Below, piece by piece: positions 1 through 41,966 of a stretch of 64,000 nt of DNA (position 1 is the stretch's first letter; every line of letters begins with the position of its first letter). The stretch comes from Mytilus californianus. Lineage: Eukaryota. The stretch lies in contig NW_026262581.1 of assembly GCF_021869535.1 (NCBI RefSeq), forward strand, positions 5,022,001 through 5,086,000, in the 5' to 3' direction. The notes beneath the pieces are model-generated. The model had not been told where the DNA came from. It saw only the letters and a program-made list of their open reading frames with translations, and did not search any database. Both the position numbers and the translations under genes were made by a program.

Positions 1-945
1 CTATTTTATTGGCGAGGCGCTGCGGAGCGATCTTCAACACACTAAGAATCTTTTTTTAGTGATATCAGTAATGTTACAATTAAACAGACCATCTACTGAG
101 CTGTTCCCATCCCTGACTGACTGCTGGTGTTGGTTTTTTTTTTAAATGGTGAAGAATATTACACTTTTCCAACGTCATTGTGCATTCCCTTACACGAGCT
201 ATAGCCGGCGGTGTACTGTATTTTGCAACTGATGTTCTGTAAATTGGAATATCCAAAGCGATAAACAAACGGAAACTGAATAGAGATTAGTTTTTTTTAG
301 GCTTTCAATCATACTTTTGATATAATTTATATAAACATGATAAATCGGCAAATAACTTCTCTTGGCTTCTTATGACAATTAACCAAGGATTTCAGTAACA
401 AGAAGGTTCATACTTTATAAATCTTTGCATTAATTCAATTCGTATTTTGAAGACATACAAAGGACACGGTACACTAAGGGCCGTATTTGGCCCCCTATTT
501 TGTCACAAAATCATTTTCATGAAACAAATGAACTTAGCATCGAAAAAGATTTGCATATATCTGTTCTTCAGTAGCACATGCGTATTTTATCTTTTAGTAA
601 ATCAGAAACCTGATTTTGGGTTGCTTAAAGTGCTTTGAATACGTCAAAAGATAGAAAAATGTTGATTTTTGGACTGAAATCCTTCGTTTTAAAAGGCCTC
701 CGCTGTAAAAAAAAAATAGTAATTAAGATGGCATACAAACGGGGTTTGCCTACTAAGAAAAGAAATTACAGGCTCACGTTGGCGGAGGAACTCATTATGT
801 GATGAAAAAACTTATCAACATTCTTCTCAAGTACTTCATCAGGCATAGAAACCAACAATCCCTTTATGCTCTAACAAACAACAAAGAGACCCTTAGTAGT
901 TCAAAATGTACTTCAGATAAAAGCAGACACATTTATACCAGTAAG

Positions 946-3790
946 ATCAGAATGGTTTCCATTAACATCAACGGTCTAAGAGGGAAAAAACTCGAACCGC
1001 AGGCATATTTACAAACTGAAAACCCCGACATAGTAGCGCTGTAAGAGACCAAAATCGACAACAGCATTACAACCAATGAATTGATTCCAGACACATTGGA
1101 CTATGATATATACCGCAACGATAGAACAGGCAATGGGGGAGGCACAATGTTACTCATCAAAACACACCTAGACACAGCACCCGTGAAAATCCTCGAAAAT
1201 GGGTCAGAATCTACTTGGAGCAAAATCATCTTGCAAAGAAAACACCATTATATAGGAAGCTGGTACAAACCACCTGATGCCCCTTTGGATCAAATACAAC
1301 TAATAAAGGATCAAATGAATAAAATCAAGAAATTAGGGAAAGCAAATAAACAACCATGCATTCACGTCTTGAGTGATTTTAATTACCGTAAAATAAATTG
1401 GCAGACACAGTTAAATGAAGATACCAACACATGTCTAAACGGTAGTGACGGCCAGCCGTTAATAGATACCCTTAATGAGGCTAGTGCTGAACAATTCGTC
1501 CTGTTTCCAACCAGGGAAACGGTAATACGATAGACCTTTTAATTACAACCTTACCAGGGCAGTTCACAGATATCCACTCACCTGGTCGGTTTAGCGACCA
1601 CGACATTGTCATGGGTACTCTGAGATGCACAATTAAAAAAAGATAAGACCAGAAAGGACCTCCTTCCAATACTCAAAGGGAAACTACGATCAGATGAGAG
1701 AAGATACAAAGGACTTCACCAGAGACAAATACTTCAATGGCCATCAAAACACCAGGAATGTAGAAGAAAACTGGAACATGATAAACGAATTTATGCTAGG
1801 AACCACCAAAATCAAATTTCCAACTAAAACATCAAAAGGAAATCAGACAATACCATGGATAAATAATACATATAACTTCAAAGCCATGATAAAACGAAAA
1901 AACAGAACACACGCCAACTATAAAAAAAAATGAACAGCGTGGGAATAAAACGAAAATGGCAAGAATTAAGACGCACAATTAACAAGGAAATTGAAACAGC
2001 TAGTCCACAACAACTACGTCAACAACTTAATAGTCGATATAAAGCAGGATTGTAATCCATATTGGAAATATATTAACAACCAGAAGGCAGACAAACAGGG
2101 AATACCACCACTTAAGACTCAAGATAGTAAGACCGCCGATACAGACTAACAGAAAGCAGAGGCATTGAATACAGTTTACAAGCGTTTATACCAAGACAGA
2201 ATATGAATCCATTCCATACCAAACTCCACTTGTAGACAAAATGAGGAACATCACAGTAACAACAAAAGGAGTGGAGAAGATACTTAGAAATCGTTAATGC
2301 GTCGAACGCGATGGGTCCTGATGGTATACACCCCAGAGTACTGAAAGAATTTGCACCTAACATATCAGAGGTAATGGCTCACATATTCCAACAATCCATC
2401 AACAGAGGAACCATCCCAGATGAATGGAAAAGTGCTAATATATGCCCAATATTAAGAAGAACGACAGAAACATCCCGAGTAATTACAGACCAGAATATCT
2501 AACATGTATCACCTGCATACTACTAGAACATGTCATTTGCTCGAACCTAATGGAGCACTTTGAAGATCACAACATCCTAAATAGCCGACAACATGCATTT
2601 AGAAGAAGACACAGCTGCAAAACCTAACTCATCAACGTGATACACGACTGGGCAACTGCCATTGACAACAGGAAACAAATTGATATATTTATTTTGGATT
2701 TTGAAAAAGCATTTGACACCGTACCACACGAGCTATTAAAAAGTAAATTTCACAAATATGGTGTGCCGAAAAACATCTTGAATTGGATTAACGCTTTCCT
2801 ATCTACAAGATCTCGGTGCATGGTAGTGAATGGGATTAAGTCTGAAACATCAACAGTACTATCAGGAGTACCTCAATGAACGGTTCACGGTCCCATCCTA
2901 TTTCTAGTCCATATCAACGACATAGCAGAAAATGTAACATCTGAAATAAGGCTGTTCGCCGACGACTGTGTATGCTACAAAGAAATAAAAAACGAAGATG
3001 ACTGTGCAGAACTACGGAAAGATATAGATACGCTTGGTAACTGGGCGACAAATTGGGGTATGAGATTCCAACCAATTAAATGCAACATGATGACATTGAG
3101 TCGCATGAAGAAAACAACATCATTTGAATATACCCTAAAAGATACCAAACTCCAATTTTTAACATCTATTAAATATCTAGGAAAAAACATCACCAATGAC
3201 CTACACTGGGGAAAACACACAGAGGAGATATGCAACAAATCTTATAGGACATTATGATTACTAAAAAGAAACCTCTCATCATGTCCACTTAAAGTTAAAC
3301 TCCAGGCATATAAAGAACTGATACGATCTGTCCTAGAATATGTGAGCGCTGCTTGGGACCCACATCAAATATATCTTCAAGACCAACTGGAAAGTGTACA
3401 GAAAAGAGTGGCAAGGTTCATAACATCAAACTACAATTACGAACCAGGAAGTATGACAGCAATTTTTGGACCAGCTGCAATTACCATCCCTTAAAGATCG
3501 TCGAACCCAGAACAGACTTATCCTCTTCTGCAAAGGTATACACGGTCAAGCAAACTTACCATCTGATCAACTGAAAAAACGATCAAGAACAACCAAGAAC
3601 ATGCATAGCCAACATTTCCTGAGACTGCAAACAAAATCAGACACATTAACATTCAGTTTCATATCAAACACAATTAAAGATTGGAACCTACTACCCCCGG
3701 ATATCTTCACATGGTGAAAACATATGCACTTGGCAGACACGACAAATAGGCATTTTGCAATTGTCTCTCCGGTTGAGTCACCCAATAAAT
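946..3790 (+). mobile_element. Decayed CR1-group non-LTR retrotransposon (near-complete ORF2: APE endonuclease + reverse transcriptase)
   Basis: APE motifs SININGL, (Q>stop at 1042-1044)ETKID, RNDR..GGG, DFNY. RT motifs GPDGIHPRVLKE, NYRP, LDFEKAFDTVPH, SGVPQ, LFADD, KYLG. Many stops and frameshifts; AATAAA near 3784. Confidence 0.92.
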
Positions 3791-6623: not shown

Positions 6624-6664
6624 AACTTCAACCAGACAAAAGTCGTATTCATGCAAGTGTTCCG
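6624..6664 (+). CDS. Probable exon preceding TSP1-1 (TSTRQKSYSCKCS)
   Basis: Polypyrimidine tract + CAG acceptor, GTGAGT donor. It ends in phase 1 and splices to give CKCS-VNGGW, a C-x-C-x-V-(D/N)-G-G-W junction typical of TSP1 proteins. Confidence 0.55.
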
Positions 6665-9600
6665 GTGAGTACAAGGTAGTATTAAAAGCTCTTCCCTTTT
6701 TGGAGTTTCAGTCATATAGAATTAAAATAAAAAAACCAAATATATAGATACAGATATGTAAATCATCAATATCATTGATATAAATATTTCACTAATTTAA
6801 AGGATTGTATAGTGTATATATCGACCATTACTGAGTAGTGTGTAAACTTTACCAGTTTTGAGTAGTATGTGTTCCGACCAATTATGGTTATAATGTTGTG
6901 GATATAATGACCAACTTATCATTATTGATTAGTGTGCATACACTAACTGTTATCAGTAGTTTACATGTTTATACCATTATTGATTAGTGTGCATACACTA
7001 ACTGTTATCAGTAGTTTACATGTTTATACCATTATTGAGTAGTGTGCATACACTAACTGTTATCAGTAGTTTACATGTTTATACCATTATTGAGTAGTGT
7101 TTTACCATTATTGTGTAGCATTTATACCATGATGGAGTAACGTATATAACGTTACCATCATTGAGTAGTGTATACCATAATCGGTGTTCCCATTGTCTGT
7201 ATCTGTTTTTCAAAAGTCAATTTAATCACATATTTACAGATACAAGACAGTAATTGATTAATTCCGTATTCCAAGAGGGAAAATGTGTGTGCTGATAATT
7301 ATTTCCCAAAACTAACTATACAAATCCTTGATAAAACAATTTTACCATAATTATACACGTAAAAGCACGCGACGTTTAGGGCGGTGAATATACTTTTTCC
7401 GCAGGTGAATATGCTGTTTTATTCAAAATCAAATTCGTATAGAAACATCTACTAAAGTTCTATCAATATTGAATAATATACAATTACTGTCCTTTCATGA
7501 GGTAAATATGTGGTTTTATCACATATTTGTTACGAATACGTTGGGTTTTGCATATGTAATAACCTCAAAATTGCCCGGGGCAAAAAAGAGGTTATTGGTT
7601 ATTGTGCCCTGATTCCAAATGACGAGGCCGATATGGGAGTCTCGGGATGATACCATGGCCAATATTGAAAAGGGCATGTTATAATCTATACTTATTGACT
7701 TTTGAAAAACGGATATTCACTGAGGCCAACACCCGAAGTTAATATACATATTTACCGAAACGAAAGGCAGCAATTGTTTTATTCCGTATTCATAGACAGA
7801 ACATGTAATGTAATAACAATTGTTTACCAAAGCCAATTGTACATCAAACGATTTTACCATATCTATACACGTAGAAACTTCAGTTTAATTGAAGTCTGGA
7901 GCTGGCATGTCAGTTAACTGCTAGTAGTCTGTTGTTATTTATGTATTATTGTCATTTTGTTTATTTTCTTTGGTTACATCTTCTGACATCAGACTCGGAC
8001 TTCTCTTGAACTGAATTTTAATGTGCGTATTGTTATGCGTTTACTTTTCTACATTGGCTAGAGGTATAGGGGGAGGGTTGAGATCTCATAAACATGTTTA
8101 ACCCCGCCGCATTTTTGCGCCTGTCCCAAGTCAGGAGCCTCTAGCCTTTGTTAGTCTTGTATTATTTTTAATTTTAGTTTCTTGTGTACAATTTGGAGTT
8201 TAGTATGGCGTTCATTATCACTGAACTAGTATATATATTTGTTTAGGGGCCAGCTGAAGGACGCCTCCGGGTGCGGGAATTTCTCGCTGCATTGAAGACC
8301 TGTTGGTGGCCTTCTGCTGTTGTCTGTCCTGTGGTCGGGTTGTTGTCTCTTTGACACATTCCCCATTTCCATTCTCAATTTTACGTAGAAACACGCGATG
8401 TTTGCGCGTCAATATAATTTTTATGCAGGTGAATATGCTGTTTTATTCAAAATCCAATTTATGTAGAAAAATCTACTATCAAAATGGAATAAATACCATG
8501 TTTAAAAAGGTATATACCATTATTGAGTAGTGTGTACCATTGTTGAGTAACTGTATTTTCAACTGTTCAGTAGTGTATACACTGACCAATTCAATTGCAG
8601 TAAATGGAGGATGGAGTAGTTGGTCAACGAAAATCACATGGCGTAATGATTGTTCAACAAAATGTGGACAAGGAATAGAAACAGGATACAAAACCAGAAC
8701 TTGTACAAATCCAGCTCCTCAATACGGCGGCAGCAGTTGCTCTGGTTCTAGTACACAAACACAGCAACGAGCATGTAAAATCAAAGAATGCCCAAGTAAG
8801 TTATTACTTTTACATTTAAACCAAATCTGGAGGGAATAAAGTCCTTTTCATTTTTGTGTTTGTGTTGGTTCGATTTAAGTTTCTTTGTCATTTATTTGTT
8901 GTTTGAATTTGATTTTATTATTTTATTCGATTCTAATTTGAATATTCCGTCTGATATATAATACTCTGTTTAAAAGTGTTGTTTTTTCTTCAAACTGTTA
9001 AGCTCACTTTGTATTTGTAATCCTGTGTACTATTGGAAGAAGCTTATCCTAAAACCGATAAAGCATACAGACTGTTTTTCATACTTAAACCTGGTTTATG
9101 AGTATACTATTGGTTTCATTTAAAAACATTGCTGATGAGCATTCTTGCTTTTAACTCAAACCACCACATTTCCTTCAAAAAAATGTTTATGAACTTTGAT
9201 TATGGTGCATCATAATGCATACCTGGCACCCCATGACCATATTTTTATCCCAAAATATAGTTAATGAATCATAATCTCTGTTTTTCAAACTACAATGTGG
9301 TGATACAGCAAGAGGGTTTATCCTTCCACACTTAGAGTATGGTTGAGCTTAAATTTTGTGTTAAAAAAATATGGTTTTTGTGTGTATCTTTTACAATGAG
9401 ACGCACTCAATTTGTTCAATTACAGAATAAAAATCCATTTATTTATTTGAGCAAATATCATGTCTTCATGCTAAAATAATTTGATAATGTCAGATATATG
9501 TAGTGTTCTTTAATACGTAATATCATGTATTATGTTTCTGAGAAGACGTTACTTGGAACTTTGCAAAAGGTGTGTTTGATCCATTTGTCTCTTTTAAAAC

Positions 9601-12600
9601 TAAATCTTAACTATGGACATTTCATTTCCTGCTCTGTTATAATTCTAATTCATTATGTATGATTGATGCTATTGTTACTGCAATTAAGTTTATTTGATAA
9701 AGTTTATTACCGTACCGTTTAAAGCCTTTGCACTGAAAAAAACAACACTCATAAAACTTGCAGATGAGTATTTGTTTTTTAAAACGACAAATATCGATAG
9801 TGATTTATTTGAAAAAAGAAAAATGTATATTTTAGTTGATGGTGGATGGACATCTTTCTCTAAATTCACATGGAACAACGATTGTTCAGCAGCATGTGGT
9901 GTAGGTGATGAAACAGGATACAGAACGAGATCATGTTCAAATCCTACCCCAGCCCATGGAGGAAAAGCCTGTACTGGTGCAGCATTAGAAAAAGCGACGC
10001 GTAGTTGTAAGATAAAGGAATGCCCAAGTAAGTTTTCTTTCGATTTGTTTGCGATTATCTATTTTCTGTTATTAGGAATTCCCTTCACTTTTGTTTTCGT
10101 AGTTTTTTGTTATTTCAAATCAGTCATTTACAAATAAATAACTTTTCTCATAAATTTGCACTATGTTTATCGATCCATAATTCAATTGATTTTACAACTT
10201 TATCGTCATTTGCTTTGAACTCTCTATCCCTATTCATTTTCACTATGTATCACCTGACTCAAATCAAGAAGTCTTTCAATATATGTTTTCAGCAATTCTT
10301 CATTGTCTGTTCAAATAGTTCTTCACGTTTTTCATTTGTTTCAAACAAGTCAACGCCATTTGTACTCAAAGCTTTTTATGATTTTGTTCATGTTTCGTTT
10401 ACAGTAGTTCCTTTCTTAACCATTTTCCATTCTTTGTTTCACACTATTCGTCTAATTTCGCCTTCAATAGATTTTCTTCATTTATTTAAATCCTTTGTTA
10501 TTCATTTACAATAATATACACTGCTCCTTATGTACGTCTTTCACTGGATCGTTTTAACCAATTCTTATTATCGTAACTTAGTCTTTAGTTATTTCTCCTG
10601 TTTGTTACAGGCAATTTTGGTTACTTACATTTGCCAAAATTTATTGCATTTGATTATATATACATAATTTGTATACTCACTGTCTATTGGGATTTTTTAA
10701 ATTATCTTCCTCTTAACAAAACCTTTTACACGTGTCCATCTGTTTGCTGTTCAAGCGCAAACTTAACTTTGTGGAAAAAAATGCAATGAAATGCCTGAAA
10801 TAAAAGAATTCACAAGTATGTACGGAAGAGTTCTTTAAATCGAACTAGCAAATGCAGATTTTTTTGTGGAAATCAAAGATTTTTATTCTTGAATTGGAAT
10901 ATAGATAACTTCTATGGGCTTTTTGTCTACTTTCGTGTTTATTAATAATCCACACAATGTTATAACAGTTGATGGACAATGGAGCGATTATTCTACAGTA
11001 TCTTGGAACAATGATTGTTCAGCTACTTGTGGCATAGGAGTAGAAACGGGAACTAAAACAAGAACATGTACTAACCCAACACCAGCCTATGGTGGCAATC
11101 CATGCAACGGAGATTCCTCATCTTTGGAGAAACGGCAATGTAAAATTAAAGAATGTCCAAGTAAGAACTATACATGATTCTCTTCTTTAACTTTGTTTAA
11201 CAACAATGGTCATTACAAAATTTCTTTAATTCCCTTTTCATAAAAAACAAGCGTGTCAGCATCTCTTGTTTTTTTCTTTTCATTACCAAAATTACGGTCA
11301 TTTTCAGTTTTAGAATAAAATATCACCGTTTTAGTTATTTCCACCCATGAGCAACACCAATGTTTCCTCAAGTGTAGCAGGAATGTTAACCTTTCCGTTA
11401 AACAAGAGTTCATCCACGGATATTTGTGGGTTTTTTGTAACGTTGATCAATCATTAATTTTGTGTGGAATGTAATTTTCGCCTTCAATAGATTTTCTTCA
11501 TTTATTTCAATCCTTTGTTATTCATTTACAATAATATACACTGCTCCTTCTGTACGTTTTTCACTGGATCGTTTTAACCAATTCTTATTATCGTAACTTA
11601 GTCTTTAGTTATTTCTCCTGTTTGTTACAGGCAATTTTGGTTATTTACATTTGCCAAAATTTATTGCATTTGATTATACATTATTTGTATACTCCCTGTT
11701 TATTGGGATTTATTTAAATCATGTTCCTGTTAACAAAACCTTTAACACGTGTCCATCTGTTTTCTGTTCAAGCGCAATCTTAACTTCGTGGAAAAAAATG
11801 CAATGAAATGCCTGAAATAAAAGAATTCATAATTATGTATGGAAGAGTTCTTTAAATCGAACTAGCAAATGCAGATTTTTTGTGGAAATCAAAGATTTTT
11901 ATTCTTGAATTGGAATATTGATAACTTCAATGTTTTTTTTTGTCTACTTTCGTGTTCATTTATAATCCACACAATATTTACAACAGTTGATGGACAATGG
12001 AGCGATTATTCTACAGTATCTTGGAACAATGATTGTTCAGCTACTTGTGGCATAGGAGTAGAAACGGGAACTAAAACAAGAACATGTACTAACCCAACAC
12101 CAGCCTATGGTGGCAATCCATGTAACGGAGATTCATCATCTTTGGAGAAACGGCAATGTAAAATTAAAGAATGTCCAAGTAAGAACTATACATGATTCTC
12201 TTCTTTAACTTTGTTTAACAACAATGGTCATTACAATTTCTTTAATTTCCTTTTCATTAAAAAAAACAAGCGTGTCAGCATCTCTTGTATTTTCTTTTCA
12301 TTACCAAAATTACGGTCATTTTCAGTTTTAGAATAAAATATCACCGTTTTAGTTATTTCCACCCATGAGCAACACCACTGTTTCCTCTAGTGTAGCAGGA
12401 ATGTTAACCTTTCCGTTAAACAAGAGTTCATCCACGGCTATTTGTGGGTTTTTTGTAACGTTGATCAATCATTATATACTAGTAATTAATTGTGTGTGGA
12501 ATGTAATTTGTCTTTTCGTTGTTTTTATTCTTTCTGGTTATGGTATAGACTGTTTTTCTTCGACTTATTGGTCTTATTGGTATCTTCTCCCTCTATTGAG

Positions 12601-15600
12601 ATCAACCATAATCTTAATCAAAATATTTACGATCTATGCAGGAATCTGATGTTCAGTAGTTGTCGTTTGTTGATGTGGTTCATAAGTGTTTCTCGTTTCT
12701 CGTTTTTTATATAGATTAGACCGTTGGTTTTCCCGTTTGAATGGTTTTACACTAGTAATTTTTGGGGCCCTTTATAGCTTGCTGTTCGGTGTAAGCCAAG
12801 GCTCCGTGTTGAAGACCGTACTTTGACCTATAATTTATAACTTTTATAAATTTTGACTTGGATGGAGAGTTGTCTCATTGGCACTCATAGCACATCTTCT
12901 TATATCTATGTATTCTATTTTAAATAACTTTAGATTTAACTACAGATAATTTCACTGAAAATTAATACTAGTGGACAATTTTGAAAGGACACCTTTTTGC
13001 GCCTACATTATAACCTTAGCTTTTGAAATATTCAAAATTTTATCAGAAGAGAATTTTCAAGCCGTTTACTAAAAGAAAATGGCCAGTACCGAAAAACTAT
13101 AAAAGCTTTAAATTGCAAACAATAGTTCACCAACAGTTAAAGTAAAACACAACTCATTTTTTCTGCATTCGAACTGCTCTAAATATAACTAAAGATGTAA
13201 ACCAGAAGCAAATTGATAAAAAAAAAATGAAAACTATATTTTCTTTAACAAAGAATTAAAAGTAATAACATAGTTAGTTCACAACCAATAGTGTGTCCTC
13301 CTTGAAATGACTACCGATTTAAACTAGAACCCACAAGAATATTGTTTATGACACGGTATCTTACTTTTAGTTGATGGAGGTTGGACTGATTACTCAATAG
13401 TCACATGGAGCGGTAAGTGTTCAACTACTTGTGACTTTGGAACAGAAACAGGCGTAAAAACCAGAACATGCACCAACCCGGAGCCAGCATTTGGTGGTAA
13501 ACCATGTGCCGGAGAGTCTTATGCTTCAGAGAATCGACAGTGTAAAGTCAAGGAATGTCCAAGTATGTTATTTTTTTGACACTTAAAATTAAGTTTAACA
13601 CTACGAGACACCTTTCACGTCTTTACTTAAAGTATCAATTTAAGTGTGATTCAGTGATATGTTTTTCCTGTTGCAAATCGATTTAAATATTTCCCTTCAA
13701 AATATGAATTACACCAGTCCCCCATGCCCTCCACAAAAAAAACAGATTGAACAACAATATTGCAATTCCAACTTACATAAGAATAACATTCAAATAAAGA
13801 ACTATCTTTGTCACATTACGATTCTACGCCAGAGTTAATGTTAAAATTACGATTCGGTAGTTGTGATTAAGATTGTGACACGGTGTTGACTGCTGTACCC
13901 CTATTTTGACATTTTTACCTATTGTGTCTGTTTGTTTTGTTCACGCATCGTTGTCAATATGATGGAATTTGGTGCGACTGTCATGCAGGTGAGAGGTTTG
14001 ATGCTATAAAGCCGGGTTCGATCCACAATTTTCTACATGGGAGGATGCCTGTGCCAAGTCAGGAATGTGACAGTTGTTGTCCATTCGTTTGATGTGTTTG
14101 TGCTTTTGATTTTGCCATTTGGTTAGGGACTTTCTGTTTTGAATTTCCTCGGAGTTCAGTATTTTTGTGATTTAACTTTTTACATCCTCGAACTGTTCAA
14201 CAAAAAATAAATAAATATCGAAACTGAAGTAACACCTATTAAATTACAAAATGGCATCACTTTCTTGGTGTTTCATTCGTTTTTCTTTAAAGAAAATACT
14301 TCTTCAATTTGCATTTAGTATCAATTCTTTTTCGTAAATTGATAACTTTTGTCTGAAAGAGAGACGTAAGATACAGAATGGATATTCAAACTCACAAGTC
14401 GAAGACAAACCGACAACGCCATGACAACAAACGAAAAGACAAACAACAATCTACAAAACACAACATAGAAAACTAAAAGACCGAGTAACGCAATCCCCAC
14501 CAAAAACCAGGGTTATCTGGGGTGCTGCGGTAAGTAGACCCTGCTTCACATGTGGTATCCGTCGTGTTGCTCATGTAAGTACATGGGAACAATAAAGAAC
14601 CCGAATTAGATTTTTTCATACTCTCTCAGTGTTCATGTATGCGTACGCTCTCTCGTGTACAATAATCATTTCTCCATAGTAACTCTTTGTATAATAAATA
14701 GCAAAGATATTCAACAAGCTAAAAATAAATCATCAAAGATACCAGGTTTATAACTTGGTACGCCTAACGCGCGTGTCGTCTACTAGTATATAAATATCAC
14801 CAATGGTTATCGAATCAAAACAGTTGGAAGATGTTAAAGAGCCTTAACACAGAAAATTCCGATCATACGATATTAAAACTACGCTTCTTTTGTTCTAATA
14901 AAATTAGGTCTTAAAGAATTATCAGCTACTTCTCTCATACACCTGTTGGGCTACTAACGATACAGGTCCAATAAAATTCAGGAAATAAGAAAAGAAGCAC
15001 GTTATGTGTCCTACAATAGTAACAGAAAGTAATTGCATTTGACAAAAGCAAATCACCTGATGCCTTCAAAATTAAATGTACTACTTTGTGATTAATTACG
15101 CCAATAGTGAAAAAAAAAACACATTCATAAATTGCAATTTTCCTAGTGCCATCTAGAATAAATAAAAAATAAGAGTTAGTAATAAAATTGAGAATAGAAA
15201 TGGGGAATATGTCAAAGAGACAACAACCCGACCAAAGAGCAGATAACAGCCGAAGGCCACCAATGGGTCTTCAACGCAGCGAGAAAATCCCGCACCCGGA
15301 GGTGGTCCTCAGCTGGCCCCTAAATAAAATTGTGTACTGGTTCAGTGAAAATGGACGTAACACTAAAATTAAAAAAAACATACAAGACTAACAAAGGCCA
15401 GAGACTCCCGACTTGGGACAGGCGCAAAAATGCGGCGGGGTTAAACATGTTTTGTGAGATCTCAACCCTCCCCCTATACCTCTAGCATATGTAGAATAAA
15501 GAAACACATAGCAATAAGCACAGTAAAACTCGGTTTAAAAGAAGTCCGAGTCCGATGTCAGAATAGGTAACAAAAGAAACTAAGCAAAATGACAATGATA

Positions 15601-18600
15601 CATAATTTATAAAAGGACTACTAGCAGTTACTGATATGCCAGCTCCAGACCTCAATTAAACTGATTGAAAGATTATGTCTTCATAAAATGAAAATCAGGT
15701 ACAATCCCTCCCGTTAGGGGTTTAGAATCATACCATCATAAAATATATGAGAAGAACATAACCCGTATCATGCCAACAACTGGTTTTAGAATAAATGTGT
15801 TTATTTCCGATGTAAAGACCCTATGAGTGAATCAATATTAATACCAAAATATGCAATCCTTAATGATGTGACAACAGTATCGTAACTATATCCCTTCCGA
15901 ATAAGTCTGTTTAAATGTTTGGTTAGCTTTTGAGGTGAATGCCGACATTTTTGTGCTTTGTAAAGAATATTACCATAAAATATTGGATGTGAAATACCTG
16001 AACGTATAAGATGTCTGCATGTTGATTTATATTTACGAATGATGACCTTGTACCGATGATAAAATTTAGTAAATGTTTTGACTAGTTTGTGATATCGAAA
16101 ACCCTGGTGTAATAATTTTTCAGTAATACAGAGATTTCTTTCCTTGAAAGCAAATACGTTGTTACATACACGAGCGAATCGAACAAGTTGAGATACATAA
16201 ACACCATAAGACGGTGACAAGGGAACGTCACCATCTAAAAATGGATAATTAACAATAGGAAATGAAAAATCATCTCTTTTACCATAAATTTTGGTATTAA
16301 GCTTCCGTTAAAGATATAGATATCAAGATCCAGGAAAGGGCAGTGCACACTGTTAAATAATTGAAAAATGTTATTAATCACATAATACCAAGAGATATGG
16401 AACTATATGATGGATGATGACAATACAGTTTTAATTGAACTGCAGGAAATTTGCTGTTGAATATATATCTAAATAATTTGTATTTTGCTGTTGAAGTTGA
16501 TGGAGGCTGGAGTGAATACTCTATTATCACATGGAGCGGTAAATGTTCAACTACTTGCGATTTTGGAACAGAATCAGGAGTTAAAACCAGAACGTGCACA
16601 AAGCCAGAACCAGCTTTTGGTGGTAAACCATGTGCCGGAGAGTCTTCTACTACAGAAAGTCGACAGTGTAAAGTTAAGGAATGTCCAAGTGAGCTATTCT
16701 TTCGACAATAAAGATTAAAGTTGAAACTACGAAACACCTTTGACGTCTTTAAATAATGCTTAAAGAATTTATTTTAGTTTTAAGTTACATAAAGTCGACA
16801 GTGTAAATTGAAAGAATGTCAAGTTAACTGTTTTTTTTTTAATTTAGCATAACTATGAATGAATTTTAACCCCATAACTTAATATCAAAGTATTCCTTTG
16901 TCTTGAGAAAACTGTAACAAACTTTGCTGCTGGAGTACTTATATTCCAATTTTCTATTGAAGTTGATGGAGGCTGGAGTAAATTTTCTGCTATAACATGG
17001 AGTAGTAAATGTTCCACTACTTGCGACTTTGGAACAGAATCAGGAGTAAAAACAAGGACTTGTACAAGCCCTACACCAGCTTATGGTGGTAACCAATGTC
17101 TTGGAGAGTCTTCTGCTACAGAAAGTCGGCAGTGTAAACTGAGAGAATGCCCAAGTTAGTTGATATTTCAATATACATTCAAAATCTGTTTTAAAAAAGC
17201 CCCAAACCACACATAAAAAAATGGAAAAAAAGATAAAAAATTACTATCTCAAATCAACTCATAACAAATACGATCAACCATTAGAGATCACTATTGCACA
17301 TTTTATCTTTTTTTCTATAGTTGACGGTGGATGGTCTGAATATGGACCTTTCACAGAATGGAGTGCATGTTCTGTAACCTGTGGTATGGGAATACAGACA
17401 AAGTCACATGACCGAACATGTACAAATCCGGAACCTCAGTATGGCGGAAAAGATTGTGAAGGAGGAATAACCGAGACTGTTAGCAAAGACTGTGACATGA
17501 AAAAATGTCCAGGTAAGAACTAAAAAAAATAGTATTAGTTTACTTTTTACATACATTTTTCACAGCATGATCTGTAACAAATATTTCAAAAGAGAATGAA
17601 GGCGTTTGATGAAAAGAAACAATACTTCCTGATTACGCTCGCACAAATTTAATTAAGTCTTTTTGTCTACTTTTCAGAAACCATTTGTTCTGATCTTGGA
17701 CAAGGACACACTTTCACTGCTCATTTACAGCAATGTACTAAATACTTGAACTGCTTGAACGGAGAAGTAACTTTGATGAGTTGTAGTGATGGTACAGAAT
17801 GGGACAATGACCTGAAGACATGTGCATTTCCTAAAGAAGGTAGCACATGTCTGGCAACAGAACCAAATGGTAATATGTTAAGTATGTATAAAACAGATTT
17901 GGGTTATATGTCAATGAGACAGTTCCTACAAAAAAAACCAGTAAATGCAATACGCATTTAGGCATCAATACAAATATGTGCTGTATCAACATGTTAATTC
18001 ACTACTGATGTAAAAATAATACAAAAGTATCAGTGCATCTCCAAAGGTCGTCTTAATTATCAAACCGGGACATAAGTAGAGAAAGGGGAGTTTTAATGTA
18101 TGGCGGCAAACGTATACATGTTTTAGAAAGCCAGTGAAATATGAAATTACAATTTTGGTCTTCATAAAGCTAAAGGCATTATTTGAAATGAAATAGCGTT
18201 TACCTGTAATTATCATTATCATTACTATTTTGCTAGGGCTTTTTAATATGTTGGTTTACAAGTTTTTTATCTGAAAAGTTTTGGCAATTCAGTCAGAAAA
18301 AAGATCTTATAAAACTTAAATCTGTACTTCTTTTCTTTTATTTCAACTTTGTTACACTATACCCAGTGATGTTATTATATCAAGACATAAAAAATCAAAC
18401 AACATAGTGACTTGCCATTTGTAAATATCTTAATGCGAGTTTCAATTGAACGTTGTTCATATTAATGTTAATGTTGTTGTTTATTTATTTTTATTTTTAA
18501 CGCATTGCTCTTTACTTGTCTCCTTCCACTTTGCAAGCATCTGTCACATATTGGTCGGACAAATCCTTTAAAGTTCTGGGTTTCTTCTTTGTGATCATCT

Positions 18601-21377
18601 CAATATATCCACAAAGGAAAAAGATCACATAGGAATGTCTTGTAGCTACCAGTTATTTGTTGCATAACTGCCCTTCTTTGGCATAAATTATCTCTTTCTT
18701 CAGGAAGTTATAGGGCCCACACATATATATATACAAGATCACTCTCTATCCGTTCTTTTAATCCAATGTGTTCAACAGTCAAGTTAATGATTCTTTTCAA
18801 ATAATACATAATCTTGCTGTAGGGGGGAACAAAACCTCCGCTGTGACTAATTGTGTAGGGGTGTTTTTGTTGACTAAGCTAGGCTTGCAGCATCATCAGT
18901 TTTTATTCCATAAAAAACACCCTTGAATTTATCATTGTCTTTCTGAACTGAGACAGGATCTGACAGCTAGTGAGGTAGACGAGGAGGACCAATTGTGCAA
19001 TGAGCACAGTTTCACACATCTTAATCTGATATGTTTTTTTCTTGTGAAGTTCAATAAATTCTTCAAACGCCTAAACATTTCTTCAATCTTTCGTTTTCAG
19101 TTTTTCAATTGGCAGTCCCTGAGCTTGAGTTCAAGATGTTCGTCCTCTCCAATATTTCATACTTTGGTCAACAAGCAGTTCCTTTTTATCTTCCTGCCAA
19201 AGTCCTCCTTCGTGTATGGTTTTACATGCGTGTTCCAAAAACACGGGTCCAATACACTCATAATTCGCTGTGCTGGATATACATTTACGCTTTATTTTGG
19301 CAATTTTGATACTTGCATGCATGAACTGACAAGGTTATTGTTGCCGCAGTCAATTTTATCATTTATCTAAAGGAAATTATTTCGATTATGACAGTCATTC
19401 ATTTGCTCAACATACTGACGATCTCGTGCCCAACACACACTGTTTTGACGGAATGATAAATATTGGAATCAAACGTATTACATGCCATGTAGAAGACTGA
19501 AAAGTTTGATCTTTAAATTTAATACCACAATTGCCCATCGTAGAAACTGTCCCAGCTATCAGCAGGAATATTTGCAGAAAGGGAGTACGGATAAAAAATT
19601 CCCACGATGATGAAAATAATAGTCAAATGCATCTAACAAGCCACTTACAAAGTAAGATCGAACTCTTGTGGTTCTCCCATTGGAACTATGGCCTGATCTT
19701 CTATGAAAATAAGTATTACCTGTGCTTTCCATCTTACTATCATTTCCTTAAAGAAACTAAATTGATTTGCTGCAAAATGTTTGTCTTTATGTTAGTGCAC
19801 ACAATAGGTCTTTGTTGAACTTCAAAGGTCCAATACAGTTTGCTTTTCTTTTTACTTGGACTAGGTGGTAAATATTTGAATCTTATCGTAGACAAGCATG
19901 GAATACGGGATTTATTATTGCGGCAAGTGGAGGGATATCCGAAAACGTAAACAACACAAGGATATTGGACACGGCATGTGTTCATGTTCATCTACTCGCC
20001 TTTCAAAGCGCTGTTTCAAAAAGGCTCAAAATTTTTACATTTTGGATTATCATTTTTTTTACCTTTATTAAAAGGTGAGGATCGTAAGCATCCATTAAAC
20101 TTAGATAACAATAACGTCAAAATCATCTTGGAAGGAAAATTCAAAAGCGCTTTCATCATAAATTAAAACCCTGCACATCTCTCTTAAAACAGTATATTTT
20201 TGTCTTGGTCAAGTGAACCTGCCATTAACAGTTTTTTCATAAAAAAAAAGAATTACACGCCAGAGCGCTTACAATGCAATGGAACAACAGACTCCTGTTA
20301 TTTCCCCCACGTTATGTGAGGGGACAAAAATATCATGAATTTGCAAAGTGTTATATAAGACATTGTAATTAAGGCGGAAATAATGAACTAAGATGTGTTT
20401 CATTTAAGATGAAGGAGTATCCTGTCAATTTCACGGACAGCACCTTTCACATCCAACTGATTGTCACAAATTTTATCAGTGTGTTGGCACAACACCAAAA
20501 GAGATGTCGTGTAGCAACGGTTCAGCTTGGAATGACGCCATTGGAAACTGTGACCGTCCTGAAAATGTGGAACTTTGTAATGTAAATAATTCTGATGATG
20601 GTGCTGCTAATGTTGTTGAAGATGACACAAATGAGTCAGCTGTAGACGTGATAGGTAATACATATGTATGGATATGTTTTCTGAAAATAAGACGACCCCA
20701 TATAACTTCATCTTTATAAATGAAATTTGTTATCGCGGTTTTTCATTCAGTGATGGCGTGATTTACAAATTATGTTTGACTACGATTTTTCAGGAGGTAA
20801 TTTACGACAGATAACATTTAGAAGAGGACCAAACAACGACATTAAGGCAAGAATCTACCGGAACATACGGATGTACTGACATATAATTTAAAAACATACA
20901 ATTAGAGCCATATCTACTCACATTTCAAACTTGGATTTGTATTAATGTATTTCATGCTAAAGCCATAATGAATAATGTTCTAAGTAGCAAAAAGTGTTTG
21001 TTTTAAAAAAATCCTGCTCATATGAAGTATACATCAGTCAGTCTATAGTTTATAAGTTATGTACTACTAGTATTTCATATTGAAGCAATTATCAGTTGCA
21101 GTAATAATTCCTTATCAATCATTCACAAACAAACTTTTAACAAACCCTTAAAATCTAGAATTTCAGACAAGTAGACAGCATCAGCATTCAGTATAATACA
21201 ACTGTATTTTGATGTATATTTCCAGAAGAGTTCGACTGTGGAGGAAAGACAGGTTTTTTTGCTGATCCTAAAGAGTGCACCAAATACTACTGGTGTATAG
21301 CTGGACAGAAATATCACATGCCTTGTGGTGCAGGCACATATTTCGAAAAGGGAGGGTGTGTGGCAGGAACATGTTAA
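6624..21377 (+). CDS. Multi-exon gene: short Cys-containing segment + 8 x TSP1 + 3 x chitin-binding type-2 (peritrophin-A); 5' end not found; about 722 aa from the first visible exon
   Basis: Exons 6624-6664, 8601-8795, 9836-10027, 10969-11160, 11987-12178, 13371-13562, 16497-16688, 16963-17154, 17321-17512, 17678-17869, 20409-20654, 21226-21377. All introns are GT-AG with phase-1 junctions, and the exons join into one open frame ending TAA at 21375-21377. Confidence 0.9.
6920..7100. repeat. 55-bp intronic minisatellite (3 copies + partial)
   Basis: Unit CATTATTGA(T/G)TAGTGTGCATACACTAACTGTTATCAGTAGTTTACATGTTTATAC starts at 6920, 6975, 7030 and 7085. Confidence 0.9.
7879..8382 (+). mobile_element. 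5'-truncated Penelope-like family A copy with 10-bp target-site duplication
   Basis: Homologous to the 3' UTR of 15183-16348 (opposite strand); flanked by ACGTAGAAAC at 7869-7878 and 8383-8392. Confidence 0.8.
8601..8795 (+). CDS. TSP1 exon 1 (VNGGWSSWS...CSTKCG...RTCTNPAPQYGGSSC...CKIKECP)
   Basis: CAG/GTAAG boundaries, 195 nt, phase 1-1, six Cys, R-x-C motif. Confidence 0.95.
9836..10027 (+). CDS. TSP1 exon 2 (DGGWTSFS...CSAACG...RSCSNPTPAHGGKAC...CKIKECP)
   Basis: TAG/GTAAG boundaries, 192 nt, phase 1-1. Confidence 0.95.
10969..11160 (+). CDS. TSP1 exon 3 (DGQWSDYS...CSATCG...CKIKECP)
   Basis: CAG/GTAAG boundaries, 192 nt, phase 1-1. Confidence 0.95.
11987..12178 (+). CDS. TSP1 exon 4 (protein identical to exon 3)
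   Basis: CAG/GTAAG boundaries, 192 nt; differs from exon 3 by two synonymous changes (TGC/TGT, TCC/TCA). Confidence 0.93.
12637..12905 (+). mobile_element. Penelope-like 3' tail (family C-related)
   Basis: Ends in GGAGAGTTGTCTCATTGGCACTCATAGCACATCTTCTT. Confidence 0.65.
13371..13562 (+). CDS. TSP1 exon 5 (DGGWTDYS...CSTTCDFG...RTCTNPEPAFGGKPC...CKVKECP); absent from the ORF track
   Basis: TAG/GTATG boundaries, 192 nt, phase 1-1, open frame. Confidence 0.93.
14356..14583 (-). mobile_element. Penelope-like family B 3' UTR fragment
   Basis: Reverse complement matches 50200-50435 (GTACTTACATGAGCAACACG...CATGGCGTTGTC...). Confidence 0.75.
14730..14783 (-). mobile_element. Truncated, mutated hammerhead-bearing repeat (3' half only)
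   Basis: Sense reads GTAGAC GACA CGCGC GTT AGGCGTAC...CCTGGTATCTTTGATGA, versus the intact GTAGAC GAAA CGCGC GTC TGGCGTAC at 63771; the CTGATGA half is missing. Confidence 0.65.
15183..16348 (-). mobile_element. Penelope-like retroelement family A (Naiad-type): RT C-terminus + 3' UTR, 5'-truncated
   Basis: FLDLDI../KLNTKIYGKRDDFSFPIVNYPFLDGDVPLSPSYGVYVSQLVRFAR...; the ORF stops at 15801 (LHRK*) with no downstream GIY-YIG domain. Confidence 0.85.
16497..16688 (+). CDS. TSP1 exon 6 (DGGWSEYS...CSTTCDFG...CKVKECP)
   Basis: AAG/GTGAG boundaries, 192 nt, phase 1-1. Confidence 0.92.
16963..17154 (+). CDS. TSP1 exon 7 (DGGWSKFS...CSTTCDFG...CKLRECP); absent from the ORF track
   Basis: AAG/GTTAG boundaries, 192 nt, phase 1-1, open frame. 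Confidence 0.9.
17321..17512 (+). CDS. TSP1 exon 8 (DGGWSEYGPFTEWSACSVTCGMG...CDMKKCP)
   Basis: TAG/GTAAG boundaries, 192 nt; the most canonical repeat (WSACSVTCG). Confidence 0.95.
17678..17869 (+). CDS. Chitin-binding type-2 domain exon 1
   Basis: CAG/GTAAT boundaries, 192 nt; Cys spacing CX15CX5CX9CX12CX8C with K-Y-x-x-C and G-x-x-W-D motifs. Confidence 0.92.
20409..20654 (+). CDS. Chitin-binding type-2 domain exon 2 + acidic linker
   Basis: AAG/GTAAT boundaries, 246 nt; HPTDCHKFYQC...CSNGSAWN; spacing CX12CX5CX9CX12CX8C; then NSDDGAANVVEDDTNESAVDV. Confidence 0.92.
21226..21377 (+). CDS. Terminal exon: compact chitin-binding type-2 domain 3
   Basis: CAG acceptor; FDCGGKTGFFADPKECTKYYWC...CGAGTYFEKGGCVAGTC-stop; spacing CX12CX5CX9CX10CX4C. 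Confidence 0.92.
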
Positions 21378-22849
21378 TGAGTTTAGTATAGTTATATATA
21401 TTATTGATATGTAGTAAACGCCATATTTAAAAATCTTCTGTGTCATGAACACGGTTAGAAAAAAATTAGGGTAATCTTAATCTGATAATATTGTGAATTT
21501 TAGTGGGGGTTTTTTTTCAAGAAATTTTTTTTACACATGTATATATGTTTCAAATTTACACAGTTAAAGAATATAACAAATAAGAAATAGAAAAGTTAAT
21601 TTTAAAGAAATCAAGTATAAATGAAATAGAGGTGCATTTCAGTAAAAAAGTACTAACTAAATACCGACCTTAAACGTAAATTCCAAACGGGAAAGTCCAT
21701 AAAACCTTACAAAAAGAAAGGCTCGACTATCTATATCAGTCAACGGAACGAATGGAAAACAACTGTTATATTCTTTACTTGGTACAAGCATTTTTCGAAG
21801 AATATGGTGGGTTAACCTGGTTTTACAGCGAGCTAGTAATTTAGGCACATATTAACAAACGATATTAACGCTGCATTTTACATACTGAACATAGACACTG
21901 GTTAGATTCGATGCATCAATAGATTAGTATCAGTTTGGTGACATTACAATATGATGATCTTTACTTTTCAGTTCAGTGAAAACAACAAGAAATAGTGAAA
22001 GATGATACGAACAAGAAGATACATTCATTATAATGACAATTGTTAATGTCCCTTTGGTATATCTTTCGCCTCTCGTTTAATTCTTTCTTATTTAACATTT
22101 TTATGTAATTATCATTAAATAAGTACTTGCAAATGACTTAGCACGTGGTCTTGTCGTTTAGTGCCCTGTCAATGCACCCGTCTTGATGCGATTTGGACAT
22201 TAGCAGATTACTGGCGCCTCTGATTTGCATGAAACTGAAGTTCCTTATTTTCACACAGAAATAATAAATTCGTGTTTAAAAATGTTTGTTTTGTATAATT
22301 TAAAAACATAAAAATAATTATTAAATATCTATAGCTCAGGGGTAAAGAATTGAATTGTACTATCAAATCATAAAGAAGTTCTAGTGCAGTGCCACATAAG
22401 TTTTTTGTCATGATTGTGTCTGTCTCTTTTCAAGTTATGAGTTTTGATTCTCGATTTGATGTCTTCCTGCTCTTTTTTTAAAGGAAAATAAAGTAATTCA
22501 AGTATTTTGTTAGGTTTCAACAAATATTTTTGGGACCTATAAAATAAGATTATTTTGAAAGTTATTGAATAATTGAACTATTTTTTTTTCTCATTTTAAA
22601 TAAAGTCTTTTTATTGAGTCTTTATCTCCTAATTCTGTTTTTTCTGGAGGTTTATGGGTTCATGAAATATTCATTTATTACTTTCAAAACGATTTTCACA
22701 GAAATTTACTTGCAGCTGCAGATGATATAAAATCGTTTATGAAGTAGAGTCTAAACCGTACAAATCTAATTATAAAGCTTAATTCGAAAGGATCACTTTG
22801 TAACGATTTACAGGGAAAAAACGAAATATCAGTCATGTTTGTAGTCAGG

Positions 22850-39200: not shown

Positions 39201-41966
39201 CTGGATATTGTCAATCTATTCCTCTTCATTCTGGCTACCATTGGTGGATCTAGAGACTAAATCCAGAAAAATGTTTTAAACGCTCTGTTCAAGAACAGAT
39301 ATTAAGTTATTGGTTTGGGTAGTTTCTAGTCTCTTATTAAACAAAAAGGGTCATGTTTTATGCATTGCTTTAAAATACATTTGTAATAAGAACCATAACT
39401 GTACAGAAATGGTGAAAATTTGCACATAAATAAAGTTTTGCACTTTGTATTTTGATATTCATTACCTGTCTAATAGACAGTCTATGGTAATCATATTTAC
39501 ACTTAGACCTAGTTAGTTTTTGTGTATACAGCTTGAATTTGGAAGGATAAAAATCTTAATAAATGATTTCAAAATGACAATCATACTGATACTCAATGTT
39601 CATTGTTTGTAGCACTTTGTACAATATTTCATTCTATACCCTTTCATACCAGCATAAATTTCAATGTAGCTCTTTGAATGAATGAAATTTATGACTAGTT
39701 GTTTTCTGTTTTTTCTGCTATTGCAGAGCTTTTTGCTGTCATTTTTGTCTGAACTCTATCACGAACTGTTTTATCATTGTTGTAATAATTTCTGACACAA
39801 TGCAGGAGAAGAATGTAAGATTACCTTTGTCTGCAATAGTGGACGAAATAGTACGTCAAGATTTGTTAACTCGTGCAAGATCGTGATTTTAGAGGAAAAT
39901 ATCGATTGTACATAGTTTGAATGGTAACATCAATTAACCAGTTCTGATTACGACCAGTTCAACATTTCATTCGGTATGCAGAAAAAGTTTAGTTATTCTA
40001 TTAATCATTTAATTCTGTAATCACTTTTTTTTTTTACCTTTTTCCAAAGTTTTAAACATTTTTTTTTAAAGCACCCCTTTATTCTCTATTCTTTACTTTT
40101 TGCCCACCTTCTCTTTTTGGGGGGTAGGGGCATTATTCTCTATTCTGTAAACCTCATCCACAACCTCATATATCTTGGGTTATTTCAAATTAATATCTGA
40201 TATTTAAGCGCCTTTTAGCGGGGTAGGATGCAGAATACAATAAGAATATCCAGAAGGAGATTTTTGGTGGTCTCTTAAAAGTCGGTAAGTCTGTGCATGG
40301 ATTAATATGCTACAACCAACCAACAAAAAGGATTGCCTTCTAGGAATACAAAAGCTATAGAATATGTTTTTATATTATTTTTTTTTTGCTGTTTGTCTTT
40401 TTGTCGTCTCTCTATGGTCATGGTGTATCAACGACAACGCATGCAACTTCTTATTTTTTGTTTAAAAATTCTTCTCTCCGTCATAAATATGCGTGAAATA
40501 TTTGCCACTATACGTTCAGAAAACAACAATCAATCAATCATGACATCTTACAAATTAAGTCAGGAGTAATTTTTTTCTTGTGAAAATTGCCAACGTGGGA
40601 ACGTAAACCAACCCAATTTAATACTGCTTCCATTTCTTCCATTTTCATTCCATCCCGTAAAAGTGTCCATGAAGAAAACGTCCGTCGAAAATGTCCGCGT
40701 TCGTTTTTTTCCGACAATTTCCGTTATTGATTTCCCAATTTTTACTGCATCATCATAATGATACAACTACTGAACATATAGTTCATTGAACCGAGTATAA
40801 TACAGGTGCTTTTACTGAACATAATGAATAATCTACCGAATATAAAGAAACCGGGACCACTGAAGGTAATACATAATGTACTGCAAATAATATTGAATCT
40901 ACTGAACATAATGTCGAAAGTACTGAACATAATGAAAAATGCACTGAATATAACGTCAGAAGTACCGAACATAATTTAAATACCGGCACTGCATATAATA
41001 ATGAAACTACTGAACATAATAACCAAAGCACCGAACATAATGTCAAATCTACTGAACATAATATAAATACTACTGAACATAATGCATAAAGCACCGAACA
41101 TATTAAACAATCAACATCAGAAGACAGTCATGGCGTTCTATACATAGCTTTCGTTTTTATATTGTAGTGGACTAATTATTTAAGTTTTTATATTGTAGTG
41201 GAAATGGCATCGGGCTATTTACTGGACGATTCGTGTTATAATGGCAGCATATGCTCTAGGGGCTGTAATAACAAGCTATGTGATGTCCGTTGGAGATAAA
41301 CATATCATTCTTGTGTATTTAACCATTTGGACATTCACACTGCTTACAATACATCTATGGATAGCTACTGTCATAACAATATTTTACAGACCAACTATGG
41401 ATAAATCTGGTGAAAAAATGCATGGTGTTACAAATCCAGATTTTCTACCTTCAAGTGTTGAAAGTACCATTTCACAAACAGCAGACACGAGCAGAAGCAA
41501 CATAGAAGATATAAGATGTATTCCGTGGTTCTTAAAACTGTCATGGTTGCTTGGAAACGTCGTGTTGGCATTTGAAATTGTGGTTACAATAATTTACTTT
41601 GTATTTTTATTTCCGGATGAGAAAAACCGGGGCGTATTAATCAACAACATGAATATGCATGCTATGAATACAGTGTTTGTTTTGGTTGATTTTTGTATTA
41701 GTGCAAGACCTGTTTATTTGCTGCATGTGATTTACCCAATTATATATGGAACTATCTATGCTGTATTTAGCGTCATTTACTGGACACAAGACCACGTGAA
41801 TAACGTGCTATATTCTGTTCTAGATTGGAATAGTCCAGGTTATGCTATTGGTCTGGTAGTGATTTTAGCTATTGTCATTCTACCTTTGTTTCAACTTATA
41901 TTTTTTGGATTGCATCGTTTAAAGTTAAAGATCTATTATCATTTATATAAGACGACATATTTTTAA
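33137..41966 (+). CDS. rost: Protein rolling stone-like multi-pass membrane protein (Far-17a/AIG1-related), 2 coding exons, 283 aa
   Basis: Exon 33137-33220 (MCDILKAEFKLQNFGFPCSKPEALYTCQ|gtatgt) joins exon 41199-41966 (tag|WKWHRAIYWTIRVIM...YLTIW...HAMNTVF...HVIYPIIYG...Y.VLDWNSPG). The EF.L..FG...Q-W N-terminus and YLTxW, HxxN, YxxLDWxxP motifs are typical of the family. Confidence 0.88.
33985..35170 (+). mobile_element. 5'-truncated RTE-X-like LINE (RT C-terminus), in the rolling-stone intron
   Basis: VFRKGG, GRKALF, YYDLGRLPL, GR...RLC...EDEVHFIYKCPSY motifs; several stops and frameshifts. Clade assignment is tentative. Confidence 0.75.
35410..35640 (-). mobile_element. 3' end of a non-LTR element with (TTA)n tail
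   Basis: (AAT)n run at 35412-35438 preceded in sense by AATAAA; no coding remnant. Confidence 0.45.
37327..37447. mobile_element. Hairpin MITE
   Basis: TGTTATTCGGGCTTCACAGGGGATATGGGCTCATATT pairs imperfectly with AATATGAGCCCACATTCCCTGTGAAGATCCTGAATAACA. Confidence 0.6.
38092..41149. repeat. Large inverted repeat (foldback-like): ~1.0-kb arms 38092-39133 and 40136-41149 around a ~1.0-kb spacer
   Basis: Arms are reverse complements along their length (roughly 90% by eye); the outer ~400 bp of each arm is a degenerate 21-bp tandem array (TTATGTTCAGTAGTTTTGACA-like). Confidence 0.9.
41199..41966 (+). CDS. Rolling-stone-like second (terminal) coding exon
   Basis: TTTTTATATTGTAG acceptor, CTAAT branch-like site at 41172-41176, 768-nt open frame with several hydrophobic segments. 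Confidence 0.9.
   Translation, partial: WKWHRAIYWTIRVIMAAYALGAVITSYVMSVGDKHIILVYLTIWTFTLLTIHLWIATVITIFYRPTMDKSGEKMHGVTNPDFLPSSVESTISQTADTSRSNIEDIRCIPWFLKLSWLLGNVVLAFEIVVTIIYFVFLFPDEKNRGVLINNMNMHAMNTVFVLVDFCISARPVYLLHVIYPIIYGTIYAVFSVIYWTQDHVNNVLYSVLDWNSPGYAIGLVVILAIVILPLFQLIFFGLHRLKLKIYYHLYKTTYF

Follow-up and report, generated by a model that had tools for sequence, protein, structure and literature searches.

In Pif, BMSP and certain shell proteins of Tridacna and Haliotis, all of them secreted proteins of the matrix, a protein-interaction module is combined with peritrophin-A modules, the chitin-binding domains also known as CBM_14 or ChtBD2. Proteins with VWA, TSP1 and ChtBD2 domains have been described from the shells of Tridacna crocea (Tcr_684094; PMC8217771) and Haliotis laevigata (idb_25730; PMC6003135), and thus proteins containing both TSP1 and ChtBD2 domains do occur in shells. 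In the tube proteome of a tubeworm, TSP1 and ChtBD2 are both enriched, as separate domains (PMC8476170). Here we describe a gene of the mussel Mytilus californianus whose product appears likewise to pair a protein-interaction module, an array of thrombospondin type 1 repeats (TSRs, TSP1 domain), with chitin-binding modules. The gene lies in a window of 64,000 nucleotides (RefSeq assembly GCF_021869535.1, contig NW_026262581.1, positions 5,022,001 to 5,086,000), and all coordinates below are positions in this window unless stated otherwise. The window is AT-rich, with approximately 33% G+C, and contains no runs of N.

We found that the window carries coding exons 3-14 of a gene modelled in RefSeq as “coadhesin-like”. 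Six-frame scans of the plus strand revealed eleven cysteine-rich open segments between 8.5 and 21.4 kb, separated by many introns. These are eight TSP1 exons followed by three CBM_14/ChtBD2 exons which, together with a short upstream exon, lie between position 6624 and a stop codon at 21375-21377. The scans, Pfam matches and exon flanks bear out the order of eight TSP1 repeats and three six-cysteine chitin-binding domains that had been proposed in an earlier sequence-only reading of this DNA. That reading had begun the gene with the exon at 6624-6664, which is a real exon and is in fact coding exon 3 of 14. The features of the gene within the window, all on the plus strand, are as follows:

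6624-6664, plus strand: coding exon 3 (TSTRQKSYSCKCS), the end of an N-terminal cysteine-rich cap; AG/GT flanks; exact substring of XP_052106993.1 at residue 51
8601-8795, plus strand: TSP1 repeat 1 (T1) exon, 195 nucleotides, with the sole WxxW of the protein; below the Pfam threshold when taken alone; aligns with the first TSR of the family
9836-10027, plus strand: TSP1 repeat 2 (T2) exon; Pfam TSP_1 1.1e-5; exact match to XP_052106993.1
10969-11160, plus strand: TSP1 repeat 3 (T3) exon, first copy in a 1.0-kb tandem duplication (10453-11456); Pfam match; exact RefSeq match
11987-12178, plus strand: TSP1 repeat 4 (T4) exon, second copy of the duplication (11472-12474); Pfam match; exact RefSeq match
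13371-13562, plus strand: TSP1 repeat 5 (T5) exon; Pfam match; exact RefSeq match
16497-16688, plus strand: TSP1 repeat 6 (T6) exon; Pfam match; exact RefSeq match
16963-17154, plus strand: TSP1 repeat 7 (T7) exon; Pfam match; exact RefSeq match; spliced joint 17154>17321
17321-17512, plus strand: TSP1 repeat 8 (T8) exon, the most canonical repeat, with CSVTCG; Pfam TSP_1 1.4e-11; spliced joints on both sides
17678-17869, plus strand: exon of CBM_14/ChtBD2 module 1; Pfam 6.7e-11; spliced joints 17512>17678 and 17869>20409
20409-20654, plus strand: exon of CBM_14 module 2 and the acidic linker; Pfam 1.1e-11; spliced joints on both sides
21226-21377, plus strand: CBM_14 module 3 and the stop codon TAA (21375-21377); Pfam 1.5e-9; spliced joint 20654>21226; the exon extends to 21380
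21381-21971, plus strand: probable intron (GT..AG) in the 3' untranslated region, which resumes at 21972; seen at the end of a contig from run X2

The TSP1 exons are each 192 nucleotides long apart from T1, have AG/GT flanks and are of phase 1-1, with borders reading ...CCA A|gt ... ag|TT GAT GG. Phase 1 is likewise found in the ChtBD2 exons, and the exon at 6624-6664 is preceded by a phase 2 intron and followed by a phase 1 intron. The translations of all twelve coding exons in the window are exact substrings, in genomic order, of XP_052106993.1, a protein of 772 amino acids entitled “coadhesin-like isoform X1 [Mytilus californianus]”. The gene is therefore already modelled in RefSeq, with no annotation gap, and its architecture is not new. 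The sequence-only reading had treated the architecture as one without an annotation or a name; this was not sustained, since it is that of XP_052106993.1 and the layout is common in molluscs. The RefSeq entry has the same sequence as the gene in the window, and its name was assigned automatically by similarity and does not reflect a function that has been tested.

Evidence that the TSP1 and ChtBD2 exons belong to a single transcript came from four public sequencing runs, here termed X1, X2, X14 and X21, which we compared with window positions 16000-21900. Spliced contigs from X2 and X14 (X14 being RNA-Seq on record) join 16963-17154, 17321-17512, 17678-17869, 20409-20654 and 21226-21380; the X2 contig is 1008 nucleotides long with a depth of 14. 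The joints 17154>17321, 17512>17678, 17869>20409 and 20654>21226 are found in both runs and all four are GT..AG, and therefore TSP1 repeats 7 and 8 and ChtBD2 modules 1, 2 and 3 are carried on one RNA. A single transcript had been predicted from the DNA, and the contigs of the two runs place the two kinds of exon together rather than on separate transcripts. The X2 contig departs from the genome at 21380, and its following 22 letters correspond to 21972-21993 with 2 mismatches; there is thus probably an intron in the 3' untranslated region at 21381-21971, four bases past the stop codon. A further X2 contig spans 16497-16692, which covers the repeat 6 exon, and the letters at both of its ends do not match the genome. 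Run X1 extends over introns as well, in the manner of DNA.

The 5' end of the gene lies outside the window. The signal-peptide exon and the cap motif (described below) were looked for inside the window and neither was found there. Two upstream exons, 4.7 kb and 0.9 kb ahead of the window, were located when the N-terminal sequence of the M. galloprovincialis orthologue was searched against the same genome:

Window -4747 to -4692: coding exon 1, signal peptide, MKLLLSLCLLVVLIQYVH and the initial two bases of the Gly codon that comes next
Window -900 to -808: coding exon 2, cap, GCQTCYMTEEYVSNYFSSCGLFGWSRCART and the initial two bases of the Arg codon that comes next

With these exons the 14 exon lengths total 2316 nucleotides, or 772 codons, and intron 2 measures 7.4 kb. 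A decayed non-LTR (long terminal repeat) retrotransposon occupies part of intron 2 (800-3700, plus strand), with fragments matching Exo_endo_phos_2 (E 5e-5) and RVT_1 (E 6e-8) and many short open reading frames.

The encoded protein consists of a 19-residue signal peptide, a 44-residue six-cysteine cap, eight TSP1 repeats and three CBM_14 modules at the extreme C-terminus; its architecture can be written as TTTTTTTTCCC, and 0 residues follow the last module. Without the signal peptide, the disulfide-rich mature chain comprises 753 residues and has a mass of approximately 81 kDa, an isoelectric point of 5.4 and 72 cysteines (9.6%). Secretion is supported by the signal peptide found upstream of the window. 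In addition, Pfam and the hydropathy of the whole protein agree with the earlier statement that there is no transmembrane or catalytic segment, and no hydrophobic segment was seen beyond the signal peptide (maximum Kyte-Doolittle 19-residue mean 0.36). The chain does end on a cysteine, as had been noted (...VAGTC before TAA), and the linker before the last chitin-binding module is indeed acidic: the stretch around it has 10 Asp/Glu and 0 Lys/Arg in 31 residues, and pteriomorph bivalves have conserved this pairing of an acidic linker with three CBM_14 modules.

The domain assignments were made at the Pfam gathering cut-offs, which are 21.6 bits for TSP_1 (PF00090) and 22.1 bits for CBM_14 (PF01607). 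When the exons were scanned singly, seven of the eight TSP1 repeats passed with 21.9-44.9 bits and T1 fell below the cut-off, and the whole protein scored 124 bits against TSP_1 across 7 stretches. T1 shares 47% identity with the first TSR of a scallop homologue. All eight repeats contain six cysteines. As to the Trp ladder (WxxWxxW) and Arg layer (RxR) of this domain, a full WxxW is present only in T1, and T2-T7 have W..[YF]....W and K/R-T-R instead. Successive TSRs are joined head to tail via a single junction residue, Ile (...ECP-I-DGGW...). The pattern C-x-x-S/T-C-x-x-G, the consensus for O-fucosylation, fits six of the TSRs. The three CBM_14 modules, also with six cysteines each, scored 42.6, 45.1 and 38.2 bits (E 7e-11, 1e-11 and 1.5e-9). 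By sequence, the closest solved structures are TSR1-3 of thrombospondin-1 (E 7e-28), UNC5 and properdin (about 1e-11). The extra domains of coadhesin, hemicentin and SCO-spondin, for example VWA and Ig/EGF/G2F in hemicentin and VWD, LDLa and CTCK in SCO-spondin, are absent from XP_052106993.1 by Pfam.

The cap comprises residues 20-63 of XP_052106993.1, encoded by the exons at -900 to -808 and 6624-6664, and includes six cysteines and the motif Y..SCG.FGWSRC.R.R at residue 38. No Pfam model matches these residues. In relatives from bivalves and gastropods the motif comes after the signal peptide; it is carried by 13 of the 20 family members examined, and the cap also stands at the head of some mollusc proteins that otherwise consist of TSRs only (P0156, P0291 and P0195). 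AlphaFold2 was run on the cap and T1 with a 15-row alignment and returned a mean predicted local distance difference test score (pLDDT) of 69.5, with values around 80 across the cap. In this low-confidence model the cap is predicted to form one long beta-hairpin with the motif at its turn and a TSR after it. A Foldseek search with the model returned weak TSR matches only (best E 0.03), none of them specific to the cap.

Proteins with the same layout, a cap, a TSR array and two or three C-terminal CBM_14 modules, are found in mussels, oysters, scallops, a freshwater mussel and many gastropods, including the genera Ostrea, Saccostrea, Argopecten, Pecten, Ylistrum, Sinanodonta, Haliotis, Gigantopelta, Patella, Pomacea and Littorina. 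The family goes by automatic names only (“coadhesin-like”, “hemicentin-1-like” and “SCO-spondin”). Pfam finds just TSP_1-type and CBM_14 domains in XP_052106993.1, and these pipeline names reflect TSR similarity only. To compare the members, 20 mollusc proteins were scored against profiles made from the TSR and CBM_14 exons of the window. In all 20 the CBM_14 modules come after a TSR array and stop 0-2 residues short of the C-terminus. Members from pteriomorph bivalves (Mytilus, Ostrea, Saccostrea, Argopecten, Pecten and Ylistrum) carry three CBM_14 modules behind 5-8 TSRs, and the linker that leads into the third module is acidic (4-9 Asp/Glu, 0-1 Lys/Arg). In gastropods the array holds 3-14 TSRs, the CBM_14 modules number two, and the linkers are short and not acidic. 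Thus, the gastropod members differ from the window protein in both the number of chitin-binding modules and the linker, as do the Mytilus paralogues on another contig of the same genome (C57). The latter form a tandem pair on the minus strand of C57, at 3312110-3327624 and 3345834-3365408, each with about five TSR exons and two CBM_14 exons. In the second of these an in-frame stop splits one TSR exon (3351312-3351527).

Within the genus, orthologues were identified in M. coruscus (CAC5393669.1), M. galloprovincialis (VDI64388.1 and XP_076100380.1), M. edulis (XP_071180066.1) and M. trossulus (XP_063419701.1). They share with the window protein the cap, 7-8 TSRs, three CBM_14 modules with the acidic linker and the ...VAGTC end, whereas the number and identity of the TSRs vary. 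Identity to the M. coruscus and M. galloprovincialis orthologues, exon by exon, is approximately 72-100%. Word searches seeded with P0137, and with an alignment of the scallop homologue and the separate window exons, recovered the Mytilus orthologues, and XP_052106993.1 and its three isoform records belong to the cluster of the best match. A word search with the C-terminal 195 residues returned Mytilus orthologues only and is uninformative on breadth beyond the genus. A large representative search with the exon of ChtBD2 module 2 was swamped by proteins with many CBM_14 modules and gave one relevant match, P0137, a three-TSR paralogue model.

The content of the TSR array varies between closely related species. 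TSP1 exons 3 and 4 lie on the two units of the tandem duplication (10453-11456 and 11472-12474), which are 95.3% identical; the two repeats have the same peptide, and their 192-nucleotide exons differ at only 2 synonymous sites. M. galloprovincialis has 7 TSRs. In M. coruscus repeat 3 is single, and the total of 8 TSRs is reached with an additional repeat resembling repeat 5, which indicates that the number has been held at 8 by different duplications. Variation is also seen among the RefSeq isoforms, three further records of 708 amino acids (XP_052107001.1, XP_052107008.1 and XP_052107017.1). Isoforms X2 and X3 share one sequence, which lacks one of the identical repeats 3/4, and isoform X4 lacks repeat 7. 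As each skipped exon is of phase 1-1, the reading frame is kept. Since every TSR exon has these phases, the length of the rod that the array may form could be changed both by exon skipping, as in the RefSeq isoforms, and by duplication, as in repeats 3 and 4.

Taking these findings together, we consider that the product of the gene is probably a secreted adaptor of the matrix, rod-like in shape and anchored to chitin through its C-terminus. We give this a probability of roughly 0.7, a figure that applies mostly to the identity and general class of the protein. The reading is based on domain content, from which we infer chitin binding, rod geometry, the existence of a TSR partner and the tissue. 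The three CBM_14 modules would hold the C-terminus on chitin by multivalent binding (avidity), and the TSR array would project from it as a stiff, extended rod. Each TSR of thrombospondin-1 measures about 5 nm in the crystal structure, and by that measure the rod would be roughly 40 nm long. Its faces would bind glycans or proteins of cells or of the surrounding matrix, so that the protein would couple a chitin scaffold to another partner, and the cassette TSR exons would tune the length of the rod. Candidate sites are the shell framework, the periostracum, a pigmented apical matrix and the gut lining. In a correlative report, chitin-binding genes named “coadhesin-like”, which may belong to the present family, are up-regulated in pigmented, chitin-positive abalone epithelium (PMC13544226). 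Full-text literature searches found no publication on this architecture and none that tests the function of any member of the family.

Several observations weigh against the adaptor or temper the evidence for its gene. No entry combining a TSP1 array with a triple CBM_14 was found in the shell and byssus proteomes of searchable papers. In the PDB, the CBM_14 part matches a chitinase module and also a chain titled “25 kDa polyphenol-binding protein”, and hence the CBM_14 fold need not bind chitin. Few reads of the raw-read RNA run X21, from the apparent source species, fell on the gene, indicating very low expression in that sample. There is a difference of about 2% between the spliced contigs and the window, and the runs behind the contigs carry the labels “organism A” (X2) and “mollusc metagenome” (X14), so that the contigs may derive from other alleles or from a sister species. 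In addition, the joining of the 5' exons to the remainder of the gene rests on RefSeq and orthologue gene models, not on sequencing reads.

A broader form of the adaptor reading, which we hold to be rather doubtful, is that proteins with a cap, TSRs and CBM_14 modules are conserved, unstudied organisers of chitin scaffolds across the molluscs and a TSR-based counterpart of Pif and BMSP. They would connect secreted chitin, whether of the shell framework, of the periostracum or of a pigmented apical matrix, with cells or with a tanned or polyphenolic matrix by means of a rod tuned by cassette exons. If this were so, the N-terminal beta-hairpin cap would represent an undescribed module.

Among the alternatives, the one that survives best is that the protein is a soluble pattern-recognition molecule or opsonin, whose CBM_14 modules would see fungal or parasite chitin and whose properdin-like TSR rod would recruit haemocytes or complement-like factors. 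The TSR array does match properdin with an E of about 1e-11, although such matches are generic to any TSR array. The count of TSRs varies from species to species and among paralogues, a behaviour often met in immune genes, and repeat 8 offers a lead in its CSVTCG, a CD36-binding motif of thrombospondin-1. However, the ordered layout, with the acidic linker in pteriomorph bivalves, is conserved from mussels to scallops and suits a structural role better, and we regard an opsonin as unlikely. It is quite improbable that the protein is a peritrophin-like component of a chitin-containing lining of the digestive tract, for instance in the gastric shield, in the style sac or in a mucus layer of peritrophic type. 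The peritrophin-A domain is CBM_14 itself, and the proteins with many CBM_14 modules that prevailed in the large search resemble peritrophins or mucins in their domain counts, yet XP_052106993.1 has no mucin-like Ser/Thr/Pro region, and a gut lining is really a sub-case of the chitin-anchored adaptor at another location. Finally, the idea that the TSP1 and ChtBD2 exons form two neighbouring genes, or are a chance run of exon-like open reading frames or pseudo-exons, was a formal possibility only before the sequencing runs were compared with the window, raised by the 2.5-kb intron between ChtBD2 modules 1 and 2, and is refuted by the GT..AG joints in contigs of two runs, with all exons open, in phase 1 and identical to the RefSeq protein, and in the same order in the orthologues of four other Mytilus species.

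A number of other features were observed in the window. The segments 16000-16393 and 21713-21900 show very high summed contig depth in all four runs (up to approximately 128,000 in X1) and many variants; they are probably parts of a highly repeated element, which is possibly transcribed. An open reading frame on the minus strand (15801-16220) overlaps the first of these segments and has no Pfam match. A short interspersed repeat occurs in both orientations in introns and intergenic DNA (8060-8400, 15188-15540, and near 25970, 44880 and 47980), and its copies share strings resembling open reading frames such as MR.EMGN.SKRQQPD.R.DNSRRPP.GLQ. On the plus strand at 41241-41966 there is a large exon matching the Pfam family Rost (“protein rolling stone”, E 4e-16), and it is followed at 42282-43422, on the same strand, by a reverse-transcriptase fragment (RVT_1, E 2e-19).

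In conclusion, the protein is ordinary and known as a sequence, and a family that joins two common extracellular modules in a fixed order is of modest interest; should the family prove to organise chitin matrices, models of how the mollusc shell, periostracum or epithelial matrix forms would gain a component. Compared with coral coadhesin, properdin and thrombospondin-1, the window protein has the same tandem six-cysteine TSRs, whereas those proteins have neither CBM_14 modules nor an N-terminal hairpin cap. Its repeats 1-7 also have a degenerate Trp ladder (W..[YFW]....W) in contrast to the WxxWxxW of coadhesin, properdin and thrombospondin-1 TSRs. The VWA domain that stands ahead of ChtBD2 in Pif and BMSP was not found in XP_052106993.1 by Pfam, and in comparison with these and the Tridacna and Haliotis shell proteins the mussel protein is also without a laminin-G domain, a ConA-like domain and a low-complexity mineral-binding region.

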